A stretch of DNA of 44,950 nucleotides from positions 78,233-123,182 of the forward strand of contig DF237213.1 of the NCBI GenBank assembly GCA_000708835.1, written 5' to 3'. The notes under the pieces are model-generated. The model saw only the letters and a list, made by a program, of their open reading frames with translations. It was not told the DNA's origin and did no database searches. A program made the translations under genes and the position numbers. This DNA comes from Klebsormidium nitens. Its lineage: Eukaryota; Plantae; Klebsormidiophyceae. This document shows, in pieces, positions 11,034-18,629 of this stretch (its first letter is position 1; each line of letters begins with the position of its first letter).

Positions 11034-12358
11034 CAGCCTCCGCTCTCCCTACTGGCCCTTCCGTTGTCTGACGTAATCAAAACTGAAACTGAAACCATTG
11101 TTGACAAGCCTTGGAGACCGCGCTTCCTTCTCCTGAATCGAGATTCCTGAATGGCAGACAGCATGCTGGGCTGCGTTTGTCAATCCACTTCTCCAAGTGC
11201 AGATTGCCTTGAGCTACGGATGGTAGTACCAGGGCTATGGTACTCCAGATTGTATACTCCTTCGATCTAAGTTTATTATGGTGGAAATGCTGCCCCGCGT
11301 CACCAGTTCAAGCACATGGTGCGGTCTTGTAAAGGACAAGCATTATGCCAGCTGGGCATACATCCTAATCATATTGCATTATATTGGCACGCAGTATGGG
11401 TGCAAGTTGAATGCCAGCAGGTCCTGGGCCTGCGCATGCATGCTGGCCGGATTGGACTGGCAATTATAGCAAACGCGAATTCAGCGATCCCTGAATGGCG
11501 GCGCCGCCACCGTCCCACATGGCGCGCGCGGCACTGGAATGCACTGGCATTTCAAGTTCTTCGGCTAGCTAGGCCAGCTTCGACACACCCATAATCCAGC
11601 AATTTTCATTCAAGTCATGCATGAATTATGCACATGTCACTCAATCCAGTGTTTAATACACATATTTAATTCAAGCAGGTGTTATGACATGCATGCTATA
11701 AGAACGTGGCCACGGCGCACTGATTGAAAGTCTGAAAGCTATATACTCAATATATGATCCAATGATGGTGCATGGCGGCCGCCAGCTCCGGCCGGCCCGC
11801 CGCCCGCCGCGCGCGCACGCAATGAATGCACATATGATATGGCATATCCATATATACAGGCTCGGGCCCCATGAGTGCATGATCATGCGAGGGCCGGCAG
11901 CAGCTATCGCGGCGGCGCGCAACCGCGATCGTTGCTAGCCTGCATGCTCAATATCAGCTGGCAATATTCATGCGTATATGTGTGCTTGAGTCAATCTTGG
12001 ATTGTGCATGATAAAAGAACCCGGTACCGGCCATTGTATATGCTACGCAGCTAGTTGCACACTGGACTCGACATGTGACATGGTTTAGTATTGAACCAGT
12101 TAATCGATCATGCATAAGTCTGTTGGTTCTGGTCACGATCAGTGCACGGCCGCTCAGTGTGGCTCACTGAGACCGAATTGAATTGAGCGGACAACAGAAA
12201 GTACATGAAGTTGCCCATATTTTTTGCTTTAGGACAGCGCCCATGCATCTAACGTTCGGAGACTGGCGGAGAGAGTATACTCAAGGATACCCATGAAAGG
12301 GTTGACAATGCGAGAATCGACGCAGCGTTTCGAGCCTTCATATCTGTGTTAAGTCTAC

Positions 12359-15300
12359 CTAGTGAGGCACTCGCAACCCTTTCGTTTGTAGCACCCTTAG
12401 ATAGGCCTCTTTCAGATCGTGGAACTTGCTTTGCGCCTCTCCCGAAGCTAGCAACAATGCGTCACTCCCCTTCGAAGTGCGGCACCCGTCTCGCTTTCCC
12501 TTTTCTGCGTAGGCTGCGTCCTTCGTTTGAGGAGCCTTCACAGCACGTGACGTCACTGGTGCCCAGGCCCAAGGTTTGGGAGGGCCGTCGAGGCTGCTGT
12601 CGCTACTGCTCAGACTCTGATGCGGAACACCCGCTTTCAGCGACGCCGTCGCCTGTACTTCCCCTTTTTCTGGAACGCCCGTCTGCCTTTCTCCAGCCCC
12701 AACTGGAACCCTCGCCTCCGCTCTCCCCTCGTTTGACGTCAGCGGCTCCGCGAAACTGATGCTCCGAGCAGTGGGCGCTCCCGCGTACCCGGGCCTCGCC
12801 TTGCCCGCCTGCGAACCCTCAGGCCCCCAGTCGCTTGCTTGTTCCTGCTTGTCTGGAGAGGTGTCCGGACTGGGCGTCAAGAACGACACACTGTCTTCGT
12901 CCGTTTCCTGTTCCAAGCACGACTCCGCCCCCGCACGCTGCCTCCCCACCCCGCCTTCTTGACCCCGCAAACCGTGCTCAGAACCTCGAACCAACCCCTG
13001 CGCTCTTGCAACAGGGCGACACCTGTCCGTAGGCGATTGGCCAGCCTCCCTCGTTCGAAGCCTGGTCTGTAGCGTCTCAAGCTCCCTCGTTAGTTGCAGC
13101 ACCTGAAAACGGCAATCTTCGTACTCGGCTTGCGCAGTCTCCCGCTGCGCGCGCTCTTGCTCCGCGCTGCTCTCAGCTTCGGTCAGCCGTTTTCGAAGTG
13201 CCACCACTTCTGCCTGGCACCGCACCTGCAAAGTAAGTGGACTCAGTAAAATGGAACTCGCTTCAGCTATCAAGTTTTTGCTGGATGCTTCAAAGGGTGA
13301 ATCAGAGTCGAGACAGGAGGGAAGCCCGGCATGGTGCAACGGACCTGTACTTAGCTTTAGTCTGACGGGCCAGAGGGCTTCGCCGCTCCTTTCTCGTTGT
13401 TTCGTTTGGATGGGATGTCTAACGAAGGTGCTTGCTAGAAGTAGGCATCTCTGGCCGCGTCAATATCCAGAACGCAAACTTCCAACACGGACAGAGATTG
13501 AAGTGAGACGACACAAAGGCCTCCAATGTGCGAGGTCGATTGCAAGAGCAGCCCCATGTGCACCGTAGAAACGACCCGGGAAAGGTCGTCTGCTCTCCTT
13601 CGAGAAAATCTTTAGGAACGGCCAGCAACCGCACCACACGGCTGCACTCCACAACAATCACACGCAATCTTGCACAGGCAACAACTCGTTGCACAAAGCG
13701 CGGTTCGCACCTGGGCCGCCTCGGCTGCCTTGGCCGCTGCCTTGGCCTCCGCCAGCTCCCTCCTCATCCGCGCCCCCGCCTCCCGGGCCCTCTCCCCGCC
13801 CGCTTTCTCCGCCTCCCTCTCCCCCGCTAGCTCGTCCGCTCGCGCACGCAGGGCCTTCGCCTCCCTCCGCGCCGATTCGAGCAGCGCCGCACTGTCTTTG
13901 GCAGCGGTCTGGGCGGTCTCCAGGTTGCGTGCAAGGGCCTCGTTCTCTGCCTTCTGGAACTTGACACGTTGCAGCTGCAAGGGAAATGACGGCTCAGCCC
14001 CAGGTTCTCATGAACCAGCAACTGCAGAGAGGAACCAGGGAAACGTCTCGATGCACTCGACAAAAATAGCTACGATATCGTCTGACTGTATACTTCGCCC
14101 TTGAAGACCGTTCTTCGATGGCGACAGTTAAAAGGTTAGATCCAGGCGACATATGATCCAAGAGCCCGAACGACTCTCGACAGCTTCGTGAATGCGTCGA
14201 CTGCTGTTTGAGCCCGGACAAGGAGAATGGTTCGTTTGGCGACCCTGAGCTGCCCTGGGCCCGGGGGCTGTTAGAAGGTGCCTTTATGGCTCGGAGTCAA
14301 CTTTACCGGAAGACACGCTTTGCTTGTGTCAAAGACCATGCTCATCAAGACAAAGAGACTCACATAACACAAAGCAAGATGGAATGCCCCAGTAGGTCCC
14401 CTCCGAGTTCAGACCTAGCCAAACCCGCGAAGCCTGACCCAAAACCATTGGGGCCGATGAGGAGCTGCGCACCGTTCGATGGTCAAAAAGTGTGCATCTG
14501 ATGGCTGTGACCTTGCCATCTGACCACGTGGAGCTCTGGTCAAACTGCATACGTCAGGAAAGGCACCATCACACGCTCACTGCACACAGAAACAGGTTTT
14601 GAGATGCTCAAATATGTATTTGAAGGCTAAGCAACAGCCCCCAGGCGCAGGGTCCCCAAAAAAACTACTCTCCTTGTCGGCCCTCTGTTGTCAATGGAAA
14701 GTGGGCCAGGCATTAATTGCCGTTGCTTTCGGATTTACATACCCTATGTTACCGAAAAGAGACAAGAACCAAACGCCCACCAGCGCCTTGTTGGTCTCCT
14801 GCAGCCTGGCCTCCCTGCGCCGCGCCTCTCTCAGCTGCTCCTCTCCTTGCGCCGCCCCCTCCCGGAGCGCCCTTTCCGCGACCAGCACTCGACTCTCGAA
14901 CACCACACTAGCAGCGCCCGCCTCTTTCTTAGCCTGGTCCCTTAGTGCCGCTATTTCGGTCTCGAAGTCGGCTTCCAGGTGTTGGAGCACGCGGGCATGC
15001 TCCGCTTGCTGCTGCTCCAATCTGACCGCTAGTGATGTCGCTGCCCTGTCCTTCTCGGAGACTTCTGCCTCCAAAGCCTGCAGCGGAGAACAGCATTGCA
15101 GCTCAGAATCGCACCGCGCAGAATTGGAAGTGCTGCGGAAGCCGAGGGTAACGACCTGTCAAGGACGCATGACCAGATCGACTGTACTCCAGCAGGTACG
15201 TTGCTCGGAGAACATAAAGAAGGCGAGTAAAGCGGAAATCGCCTGAACAAGTCACCATTTCAGACAAGGTTACTTGCTAATACATGCCACAGCTCCCAGC

Positions 15301-16873
15301 CTGCAGACTCAAATGAGCGAGTGGTCAAAGAGTGCACTCTAGCTATGAGCATGAGCACGTTGTTTTTGAAGAATATTGCGAGCCAGGTAAGGTGGCCTCT
15401 TATCTGTAGAGAGACCCAAGCGCTGCACCTACTTTCACCCTGTACTGCCCACTGGCTGCTCACTGTTGGTCCAGTACTGACCTGCACGCGTGTGCGCAGT
15501 TGCTGGACCTCCCCAGTCTTTTCCTCCACTTCTCGCGTTAGCCTCGATATTGAGTCCTCCCAACGAATCTCCCCCCCGCTGCTTCTCTCCCGAGCAGTCA
15601 GTGGCACTTCGTCACCACTTCCGGTGTTTCTTGCCCCCTCTTCCGTCCTCGAGCTCGGGTGTCCCGTCTGCTCGCTTCGCACTCGCTTCTCTTCCACTTT
15701 TCCGATCCCGTCCCGCTCACTGCCCAATCCCGGGTCACCTGCTGGGCGTTCCACAACAGTGCTGCTCAATGTGAGGTTGTTTTCGACCTCTTCCCCCGTA
15801 ACTGCTTCGGCCCTGGCGCTCGGCACCTTGAAAGCTACTTCAGAGCCCTTCCCGTCACGAGAAGCCTCTCGAGGCGCAGCCGGACCTTCCTTGATTCGCT
15901 CCTCAGAAGGGGCCACTTGATGTATCTCTGGATCTTTTCTTGGTAGCATGAGTTGGACAATCGGCTCTACAGGACTCAAGCTTTCCACTTCCTCGTATCT
16001 GGGCGCAGGTTCATGCTTCCAACTCCCAACACCAACAGGTGTGTCTCCTCCGTGGCCCGCTCCCAACCCAGCCAAGCTGCGCTCCAGCAGCGCTGCCAGG
16101 GACTGCCACTCAGACTCCAGCTGGCCCCCGGCAGGCTGAACCCCCGCTTGCCGAGCCCCCTTCCATTCGCCATCACCACCAGCAACAGAGTCCAGGTAGT
16201 CCAGGTCGGGTATGCCAGGAAAGGCACTCGCGTCTTCGCCAAGAAGCGAGTCCTCCAGAGCAATTGCCTGCAAGAACGGGTCGTCGGCAACAGGCTCGGA
16301 AACTCCCGTTGTGTCCGTCCAGCGAAGCGGGTCCAATTTACCGAATGCACGTTGCAACGGGTCGGGAGGCACTTCCCTGGAGGAGCCCCCTGGAGCTCCT
16401 CCCTGCCCTTGCTTCTCCCCTCGCCCGCTTTCCCCCCTCCACCTGCGCGTGCGCCCCCTGCTCTCCTTCCGTACCCGCCGCTCAGCCCTGAGCTGCTGCA
16501 CCAGCTTGTCCGACTCCGTCAAACTCCTGAGCACCGCCATCTGTTCCTTGACTTCGTCAGAGCTGCCGCCAGGCTTCCGCGACCTGGGGGGGTCTCTCTC
16601 CGGAGGGGAAAAGCTGTAGCCTACGTGCCCTCCCCAAGCTCGCCCCTCCCGGCTGGCCTCAATTCCATCCTGAGGATTGATACTGGACCAGGAGGCAGTC
16701 CGAAGGGCTGTGGTAAATCCTTTACGAGGTTGCTTCTGTGGTTCAGCTGCGCCGGGGTTTGGCATGGGCGACGGGAGACTGCTGCTCGAGGTCTGCTCCT
16801 CGCTGTTGAGAATCTCCACCAGCTCGGTGACGTCAAACTCCCTGGCTGACCGCACCCGCATCCTTCCGCCCAT
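12359..16873 (-). CDS. Large coiled-coil / low-complexity protein of unknown function; ~4 exons, ~940 aa
   Basis: Exons 16873-15482, 15077-14781, 13974-13711, 13225-12359 join in phase 0 with GT-AG sites. Central exons are E/A/R/Q-rich heptads; termini are S/P/G-rich. No domain recognised. The 5' start and possible extra exons are uncertain. Confidence 0.7.
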
Positions 16874-16953
16874 TATCCACCTTTTATCGCCCTACATTTG
16901 CTTCAGTCTAGGAAGATAACCAACTTGAAGGAACAGCCCCCTGGATTTCTGGC

Positions 16954-17665
16954 TCACCTCTTGGCCTCTGCATACCCCGCCTCCTGCAGTTCCCTGACTG
17001 CTTCCCGCTTCATGCGCACCCACAGCTTGGCGGCCTCCCTCTCCACCTTCTCCTGCTGCAGCTGCCCCGACTTGTTGTCGACGCGCGTCGATAGCCGGGT
17101 CTTCAGATTGGCCCCCCTGGGGCCACCTGTCTCCAGAAACTTCTCCACAGCCTCCTTGTCCCCCGGGTACGGATACTCAATGTGCTCATAGCGGTGGGCG
17201 AGAGCTTTCTCCTCCTGCACAAATGCCATAGCGATACATTTCCTTTTTGGACCTACCTAGACTTGGCCCCATTGGCACAGTGGACAAGTCGTCAAGCAAG
17301 AGCGGCGACCTCGATACATATCTGCAAGAATCTCCTTGCATACGAAGAAGTCTATGAATTGTGTGCACTGTAACTCTGCTGCGACACACAGGAATGTTGG
17401 TAAGAAAACGTTAGCTAAGCAACAAGTGAAAGCAGGATCAGTGATCATCAAGTGCAGAAGCCAGATGCCAGATATCAAGCCAGATCGAAGCAGAAGCAAT
17501 TGAGCTGAGTCTATGCAATTCGAGGCGACTCGCCTTAGTGCGCCCCTTCAGATTGAACCATCCCAGGGGTGAGTATCGATCAAATGCCCACACGGCTGCG
17601 ACAAGCGCATACGTGATGCCAGCACCCTTGATGAGGGGCCAGATGCCGGAGGAAGCACCACTCAT
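16954..17665 (-). CDS. Small (~130-135 aa) putative membrane protein with an N-terminal hydrophobic helix and a YPYPGDKEAVEKF motif
   Basis: Exon 17665-17534 (MSGASSGIWPLIKGAGITYALVAAVWAFDRYSPLGWFNLKGRTK) joins exon 17214-16958 (EEKALAHRYEHIEYPYPGDKEAVEKFL...EAAKLWVRMKREAVRELQEAGY) in phase 0 through a GC-AG intron. It ends at TGA 16956-16954 if unspliced, or at TAA 16875-16873 if the GTGAG donor at 16957 is used. It resembles a small conserved land-plant protein from memory; not verified by search. Confidence 0.72.
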
Positions 17666-17812
17666 GTTCAGCAACACGCCAACGACCACCTCTATAGGTA
17701 CAGGGCTGTGCAAAATGGCTCTAGAGCTGGATCAGAAGCACCATGCACTGCAAATTGCGATGAACCAAGGCTAGTCATACCGTAACCCAGTCCTACACTG
17801 CCAGTGCTAGTA

Positions 17813-18629
17813 CCGTAGTACAAGGTAATGAATCCGAATAATTAAATGATTAACTGCGTTCGGACAGTCAGAATTTCGAATTTCCCGTTCGGAAAGTGGA
17901 AATTCGGAAAGGTTAAATAATTCTGGAATGGTCCTCGGAAGCCCCAAAACGGCCAAAAAAGCCCTAAAAATCCTCTTCTAAGTGAGAACATAGGGCATTC
18001 GGATTTGTGTCGGAATCAGCATAAATAAATCCGCTTTCCTGGTCGGATTCAGTGTTTCCACTGGGGGCCCGCCACCAGCCATTATCGCCCCCAATGGCCG
18101 ATATCGTCCCCCAATAGGAGGGGCTTGGGGGCCCAACGGGCCCCCAATGCTCGAGTCAAGGGGGCCCGACGGGCCTCCAAAGAGCATCGTTGAGGGGCCC
18201 TGTTGCCCCCATACTTCACTGTGAGGGGGCCCAACATTACGAGTTATTCTAAGCTTATATGTAACTTGCGATTAATATTGCGTGTACAACTGTGTTTAAA
18301 TATCGACAATTCGTCTATTAGGGGGGTTCTTTAGGAAGACCGACCCTGAGTACCCCTGCTTATGGAATTGAGCGTTAATTTTGTCTCATACGACCTAGCA
18401 GGGGGCAGTTTCGCGCAGATTGTGGGCCCCCAATCAGTGACTGGAGGGGGCCCTTAGGCCCCCGATTGAGCGGCTGAGGGGGCCCACCGGGCCCCCGAAG
18501 AACGGGCCCAGGGGGCCCGGGGGCCACCAATTGAAAAAGTTAGCGGAAAGCCGGAAACACTGGTCGGATTGTCGGAAAATAATTCGAAATAAAATTGTTC
18601 GGAATTATCACGTTGGACCAAGTCTACGG
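17813..18629. mobile_element. Probable degenerate non-autonomous DNA transposon (TA-flanked CCGTAG...CTACGG, possibly pogo/Tc1-mariner-like) hosting a nested MITE
   Basis: GTGCTAGTACCGTAG (17804-17818) is a 14/15 inverted match to CTACGGTACTAGTAC (18624-18638). About 12 TCGGA/TTCGAA-type motifs continue on both sides of the nested insert. Confidence 0.45.
18050..18562. mobile_element. hAT-type MITE, 513 bp
   Basis: 10-bp TIR CAGTGTTTCC (18050-18059) / GGAAACACTG (18553-18562). Perfect 8-bp TSD GTCGGATT at 18042-18049 and 18563-18570. Many GGGCCC-type subterminal repeats. No ORF. Confidence 0.88.

Follow-up and report, generated by a model that had tools for sequence, protein, structure and literature searches.

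Two adjacent nuclear genes of the streptophyte alga Klebsormidium nitens as a candidate bicistronic transcription unit

Exclusively bicistronic nuclear loci have been described in the chlorophyte algae Chlamydomonas, Chromochloris and Auxenochlorella (Gallaher et al. 2021, PMC7896298; Duenas et al. 2024, PMC11291117). At such chlorophyte loci the upstream open reading frame (ORF1) has a median length of 291–357 nt, the median distance between the two ORFs is 40–183 nt, and the median ratio of observed to expected ATGs before the downstream frame (ORF2) is 0.43–0.49, which is the signature of leaky scanning (PMC11291117). Further marks of the type are a short 5′ untranslated region, a weak Kozak-like context at the ORF1 start, conservation of the colinear ORF pair in other species, full-length single molecules (Iso-Seq) over both ORFs without monocistronic forms, and detection of both polypeptides (Gallaher et al. 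2021; Duenas et al. 2024). Bicistronic nuclear mRNAs are established in Chlorophyta and, for a few genes such as CDC26/TTM3, in land plants (PMC11291117). For Klebsormidium, searches of the literature brought up no nuclear mRNA described as poly- or bicistronic. The locus considered here lies in a 44,950-nt stretch of nuclear DNA of Klebsormidium nitens (assembly GCA_000708835.1, scaffold DF237213.1, positions 78,233 to 123,182), which is called the window and is numbered from its first letter. It comprises two annotated genes on the minus strand: KFL_002640210, which encodes a small protein of 130 amino acids (aa; ORF1), and KFL_002640200, which encodes a coiled-coil protein (ORF2). It is proposed that both genes are transcribed together into a single mRNA with five exons and a length of about 3.56 kb. 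The probability that a single RNA carries both ORFs is put at roughly 0.65, and the probability that both proteins are made from this bicistronic RNA at roughly 0.55.

The K. nitens locus resembles the chlorophyte loci in its short ORF1 (393 nt with the stop codon), its 80-nt spacer and its 5′ untranslated region (UTR) of at most about 129 nt; in having a second, longer frame (ORF2) within one spliced RNA, the order of the two being conserved in related species; and in an ORF1 product that is small and possibly mitochondrial. Co-transcription is taken as the best explanation. The locus differs from those of chlorophytes in its host, a streptophyte alga, in the great length of ORF2 (939 codons), in a ratio of observed to expected ATGs of about 1 instead of about 0.45, in an ORF1 AUG with A at position −3, and in being a unit known from short-read contigs and ORFs alone. 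A second parallel is the CDC26/TTM3 transcript of land plants and green algae (PMC11291117), a nuclear mRNA in which a conserved small ORF likewise precedes a larger one and which interacts with nonsense-mediated decay (NMD). The proteins are unrelated, however; K. nitens ORF1 is twice as long, and pairing of the K. nitens type is confined to Klebsormidium-type algae, since in mosses and Closterium the orthologue of ORF1 is solitary. The K. nitens locus is atypical in three ways: ATGs are not depleted, ORF2 is very long and lineage-specific, and three introns follow the ORF1 stop codon.

Evidence for the transcript was obtained from contigs of four public runs (X1, X2, X9 and X11, from four studies), which were aligned to positions 12000–17950. 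The designation of these runs as RNA is a guess, with which the size of the contig sets (33–43 Mb) and the spliced form of the contigs are consistent. In three runs (X1, X2 and X9) a single contig of 2283–2291 nt was placed on 17794/17790/17786–17533, 17213–15481 and 15076–14781; in X11 the same path was covered by two contigs, of which the 951-nt one lay on 17684–17533 and 17213–16415. With the ambiguity of the cut points allowed for, the shared contig runs from 17794 to 17534, from 17214 to 15482 and from 15077 to 14781. Because of this layout, the stretch from the ORF1 stop codon to the ORF2 ATG lies within contigs that are spliced upstream of it and, in three runs, also downstream. No joint was present anywhere in 17213–15481, position 16957 included, in the RNA contigs of the four runs. 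Contig depths were alike along the unit and were not counted as evidence, as depths cannot rank parts of a gene.

ORF1 begins with the ATG at 17665, comprises 390 nt plus the stop codon and gives a 130-aa product identical to the database protein KFL_002640210. Its stop codon, TGA (16956–16954), stands exactly 80 nt before the ATG at 16873, with which ORF2 begins. ORF2 consists of 939 codons plus stop in four coding parts (16873–15482, 15077–14781, 13974–13711 and 13225–12362), across which the frame is open. The four introns have standard ends, are all in phase 0 and are 319–806 nt long. A sequence-only reading, made from the letters of the window, had proposed both start codons on the minus strand, a gap of at most 80 nt and a single transcription unit for the two ORFs. 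The first two points are borne out by the sequence and the RNA-supported exons, and the third agrees with the spliced contigs over both ORFs in the four runs and with the pairing of the ORFs in two diverged relatives. The mRNA would then carry, in this order, a 5′ UTR of about 129 nt, ORF1 of 130 codons with its GC–AG intron, the unspliced 80-nt spacer and ORF2 (Table 1).

Table 1. Features of the proposed transcription unit, with positions in the window.
Feature	Position	Strand	Basis and remarks
5′ UTR of the shared transcript	17666..17794	−	contig 5′ ends at 17786–17794 in three runs; at most about 129 nt
ORF1 coding part 1 (44 codons)	17534..17665	−	start ATG 17665; holds the hydrophobic helix, residues ~9–31
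Intron 1, 319 nt, GC..AG, phase 0	17215..17533	−	RNA contigs; position kept in both relatives
ORF1 coding part 2 (86 codons) and stop TGA 16956–16954	16954..17214	−	RNA contigs
Spacer between the ORFs, 80 nt, unspliced	16874..16953	−	RNA contigs; contains ATG-TAG at 16897–16892
ORF2 coding part 1 (464 codons), start ATG 16873	15482..16873	−	RNA contigs; ATG conserved in both relatives
Intron 2, 404 nt, GT..AG, phase 0	15078..15481	−	RNA contigs
ORF2 coding part 2 (99 codons)	14781..15077	−	RNA contigs
Intron 3, 806 nt, GT..AG, phase 0	13975..14780	−	RNA contigs
ORF2 coding part 3 (88 codons)	13711..13974	−	RNA contigs
Intron 4, 485 nt, GT..AG, phase 0	13226..13710	−	joint in three of four runs
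ORF2 coding part 4 (288 codons) and stop 12361–12359	12359..13225	−	RNA contigs
3′ UTR	12218..12358	−	contig ends at 12218–12222 (two runs) and 12343 (two runs)

The contigs also correct the annotation of the second gene. The annotated KFL_002640200 model (913 aa) starts at the second ATG, 16861, instead of 16873, and omits 22 residues (a predicted 66-nt intron, 16376–16441) that are present in the RNA contigs; the RNA supports neither this start nor the 22-residue gap.

The absence of a joint at 16957 bears on a further proposal of the sequence-only reading. According to this proposal a 66-nt intron (16957–16892) is removed, so that the stop codon of ORF1 overlaps the ORF2 ATG as TAATG and ORF2 is translated by termination–reinitiation; with other acceptors the same donor would fuse the two ORFs in frame into a membrane-anchored coiled-coil protein. 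The elements named for it exist in K. nitens: the donor AG/GTGAG is found at 16959–16953, the acceptor TAG at 16894–16892 and the string TAATG at 16875–16871. Contigs drop rare variants, and a minor isoform could have been lost in this way. Neither the joint between this donor and the TAG acceptor nor any joint of the fusion isoforms was seen in the four runs, however, and in the RNA the stop and start codons stand 80 nt apart. Of the supposed donor GT (16957–16956), the G closes the final Arg codon and the T opens the TGA stop codon. The TGA is conserved in all three taxa compared (K. nitens and the two relatives described below), whereas the donor GT and TAATG are not: L001 reads AGATGAG (AGA TGA) at the supposed donor, without GT, and GACATGG at the TAATG site, which in L004 reads CCGATGG, and L004 also lacks an equivalent acceptor. 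The actual introns of the unit are, moreover, much longer (319–806 nt as against 66 nt). Splicing from this donor, with either outcome, is considered highly improbable. Between the UAAUG/AUGA-type termination–reinitiation of some RNA viruses and this locus the TAATG string is the only likeness; the ORF1 stop codon of K. nitens is a TGA 80 nt upstream of the ORF2 ATG, and an overlap would need a splice that is neither seen nor conserved. Fusion by frameshifting was considered as well and ruled out. The frame of ORF2 is closed upstream of its ATG by the TAG at 16894–16892, and therefore neither frameshifting nor read-through can fuse the ORFs; in L001 an in-frame TAA stands 12 nt before the ORF2 ATG.

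Two close relatives, with 90 % and 81 % identity, were found by searching with the ORF1 exon-2 peptide. On the 35-kb DNA contig L001 a gap of 85 nt separates the small ORF from an ORF beginning MGGRMRVRSAREFDV; on L002, L003 and L004 (25.5 kb) the gap between the ORFs is 190–191 nt. In a three-way alignment ORF1 was highly conserved, with changes mostly at third positions and a conserved TGA; conservation was lost and insertions and deletions appeared directly after the TGA, and conservation was regained at the ORF2 ATG. By the Nei–Gojobori method, the synonymous divergence (dS) of ORF1 between K. nitens and L001 was 0.43 with a ratio of nonsynonymous to synonymous divergence (dN/dS) of 0.14, and the values against L004 were 0.93 and 0.13. 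For the first part of ORF2 they were 0.53 and 0.40 against L001, and 1.8 and 0.35 against L004. Judged from these comparisons, both ORFs are under purifying selection; it follows that ORF1 and ORF2 are both real coding sequences. The tight order of the ORFs has survived about one substitution per synonymous site. Intron 1 lies at 984–1289 in L001 and at 2108–2463 in L004; its donor is GC in K. nitens (GCGAGT) and L001 (GCAAGC) and GT in L002 and L004, at the same phase-0 position. Spliced RNA contigs of relatives were sought in two scans of JGI metagenome contigs, one with the KFL_002640210 protein and one with an alignment (A3), in which no locus was confirmed.

Two features of the L004 spacer (2785–2860) are recorded in their own right. 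It contains a possible short GT..AG intron (AAG/GTAGGA ... TTGCAG), the donor of which reads GC in L002, and it contains three short ATG-initiated ORFs.

In favour of a single unit, the 80-nt gap of K. nitens would hardly accommodate both a poly(A) site and a promoter. The Chlamydomonas-type poly(A) signal TGTAA was absent from the minus strand between the ORFs and was not enriched in the window, from which no conclusion was drawn. The predicted RNA fold of the spacer was no better than that of shuffled sequences (z −0.06), so the spacer has no special structure. Rfam gave no match in 12000–18300, and no meaningful repeats were found.

In the bicistronic reading both proteins would be made from the single RNA. 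Ribosomes that skip the ORF1 AUG (leaky scanning) would arrive at ORF2 with low frequency, and access to it would be aided by re-initiation after short out-of-frame ORFs, all of which end before the ATG at 16873; a stop–start overlap would play no part in ORF2 translation. The 5′ UTR contains two upstream ATGs, at 17778 and 17744, which open ORFs of 28 and 7 codons. In the three taxa each ORF opened by an upstream ATG is at most 59 codons long, and 17 nt or more lie between its end and the ORF2 ATG. Such a layout permits scanning and re-initiation; it could also have arisen by chance.

Several points weigh against the bicistronic reading. The contigs are short-read assemblies, and a contig that covers two genes is no proof of one continuous transcript, nor does it show start, end or strand; both proteins, moreover, are known here from their ORFs alone. 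In the 602 nt upstream of ORF2 in K. nitens nine ATGs were observed where 9.5 were expected, and from the ORF1 ATG onward the observed and expected numbers were 7 and 7.1 in K. nitens and 7 and 7.6, and 8 and 9.6, in the relatives. ATGs are not depleted before ORF2, and the leaky-scanning signature is missing. The ORF1 start contexts (aacATGa, atcATGa and accATGa) have A at −3 in all three taxa, so that the context of the ORF1 AUG does not appear obviously weak. Re-initiation after 130 codons is generally inefficient (PMC11291117, discussion). Finally, by the NMD rules of plants, three introns downstream of the ORF1 stop codon should make the RNA prone to NMD if ORF2 is rarely translated. The translation of ORF2 is the weak step of the bicistronic reading.

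One alternative is that the RNA is bicistronic in structure and that in practice only ORF1 is translated from it. The ORF2 protein would then come from a minor shorter RNA or be present in traces, and the arrangement would mainly regulate RNA stability through NMD. Seven AUGs, that of ORF1 included, stand between the ORF1 start and ORF2, and two more in the 5′ UTR; the three introns after the ORF1 stop codon fit the same explanation, as does the NMD control of the plant CDC26/TTM3 bicistron (PMC11291117). Against it, the frame of ORF2 is open throughout its four coding parts, and purifying selection acts on it in three taxa; it is therefore translated from some RNA, and no shorter RNA form was seen in the contigs. 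Translation of ORF1 alone is considered improbable.

Another explanation is that there are two overlapping or abutting transcription units. The ORF2 start site would lie within intron 1 or exon 2, the ORF1 mRNA would be polyadenylated in early ORF2, or both, and the single contig would be the product of the assembler, which joined the two RNAs or included rare read-through. The genome annotation gives two separate genes, contigs cannot show starts, ends or molecules, and the lack of ATG depletion together with an apparently good ORF1 AUG context fits independent translation from separate RNAs. The moss orthologue offers a precedent: in Physcomitrium ORF1 is monocistronic, on a 978-nt RNA contig that includes a separate 3′ UTR of about 320 nt. 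The distance to the following coding sequence is 714 nt there and about 2.3 kb in Ceratodon, and no gene was called within 6 kb downstream of the Closterium orthologue; the downstream neighbours, where present, are unrelated genes. At the loci checked in these three genera the ORF pair is not kept, and a solitary existence of the small protein outside Klebsormidium, a check suggested in the sequence-only reading, is confirmed by all three. On the other side, a gap of 80–85 nt is kept in two taxa and one of less than 200 nt in the third over a dS of about 1, and no contig broke or branched in the spacer in the four runs. Two units are rated as rather unlikely, though as the main alternative, and the bicistronic RNA is preferred.

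The ORF1 product belongs, as judged from sequence comparison, to a conserved, unnamed and uncharacterised family that is streptophyte-wide. An exhaustive phmmer search with ORF1 gave 37 matches, and every source that could be named was a streptophyte. Relatives occur in Ceratodon and Physcomitrium (135 aa), Mesotaenium, Spirogloea, Closterium and many angiosperms, with E values of 8.6e-29 to 4.4e-20 for the Ceratodon, Mesotaenium, Spirogloea and grass proteins; automatic annotation has labelled some of the angiosperm records "Homeobox prospero protein". The family alignment contains the invariant motifs P-L-G-W, Y-P-x-P-x-D and E-A-x-K-L-W-x-R-M. With members of the family, such as A9TM45 of Physcomitrium patens (135 aa), ORF1 aligns over its full length at 41–50 % identity, and it has these motifs, the hydrophobic helix and a long helix at the C-terminus in common with them; a difference is that the gene is monocistronic in mosses and Closterium and stands beside unrelated neighbours.

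An AlphaFold model of the ORF1 product, of low confidence (pLDDT 65.5), has an N-terminal helix at residues 9–31 (23 residues) and a long C-terminal helix at residues 90–122, and the best 19-residue Kyte–Doolittle mean is 1.45. A single-helix membrane-type protein is a plausible prediction. Pfam was searched with each exon translation of ORF1 and ORF2, then with the database proteins KFL_002640210 (P0001) and KFL_002640200 (P0056), with the proteins P0058 and P0004 and with a ten-member family alignment; nothing was found above threshold. A profile search of the PDB with the ORF1 family gave chance matches only (E 0.011 or worse), so the ORF1 protein, having no PDB relative, is not a chain of any solved complex. 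In the ESM Atlas it stood close to unnamed streptophyte clusters and to single-helix mitochondrial subunits (NDUFB5, fungal 17.8 kDa and COX6A), from which a mitochondrial product is possibly to be expected; this is treated as a lead only.

The ORF2 product is largely disordered, with a central coiled coil. Its relatives were found in Klebsormidium-type algae only, and by this comparison the protein appears to be lineage-specific. Its ESM Atlas neighbours were generic centrosomal coiled coils without a consistent family.

Some observations on the remainder of the unit and its surroundings may be added. A contig of 865 nt runs through intron 3 (13946–14810) in all four runs, alongside the spliced joint, which suggests a sizeable intron-retention or unprocessed fraction; on reading from exon 3 into the retained intron, a stop codon is met after 29 codons. 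Immediately upstream of the transcript, contigs from all four runs match 17888–17920/17950 partially and then continue into unrelated sequence, which indicates a short dispersed repeat. Low-complexity repeats rich in GGGCCCCC follow farther upstream (18050–18250) and include an inverted repeat of 21 nt at 18125–18180.

A bolder reading, to which only a slim chance is given, is that a true bicistronic mRNA of a streptophyte alga yields a 939-residue protein downstream of a 130-codon ORF without ATG depletion, and does so by a route other than the leaky scanning of chlorophytes. This route would be either internal entry or re-initiation that remains efficient after so long an ORF. In addition, the pairing might allow a membrane anchor and its coiled-coil partner to assemble during translation. 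If the bicistronic reading is true, the locus would help to show that the bicistronic arrangement spans the green lineage, Klebsormidium being a close algal relative of land plants, and would provide a test case without the usual leaky-scanning signature.

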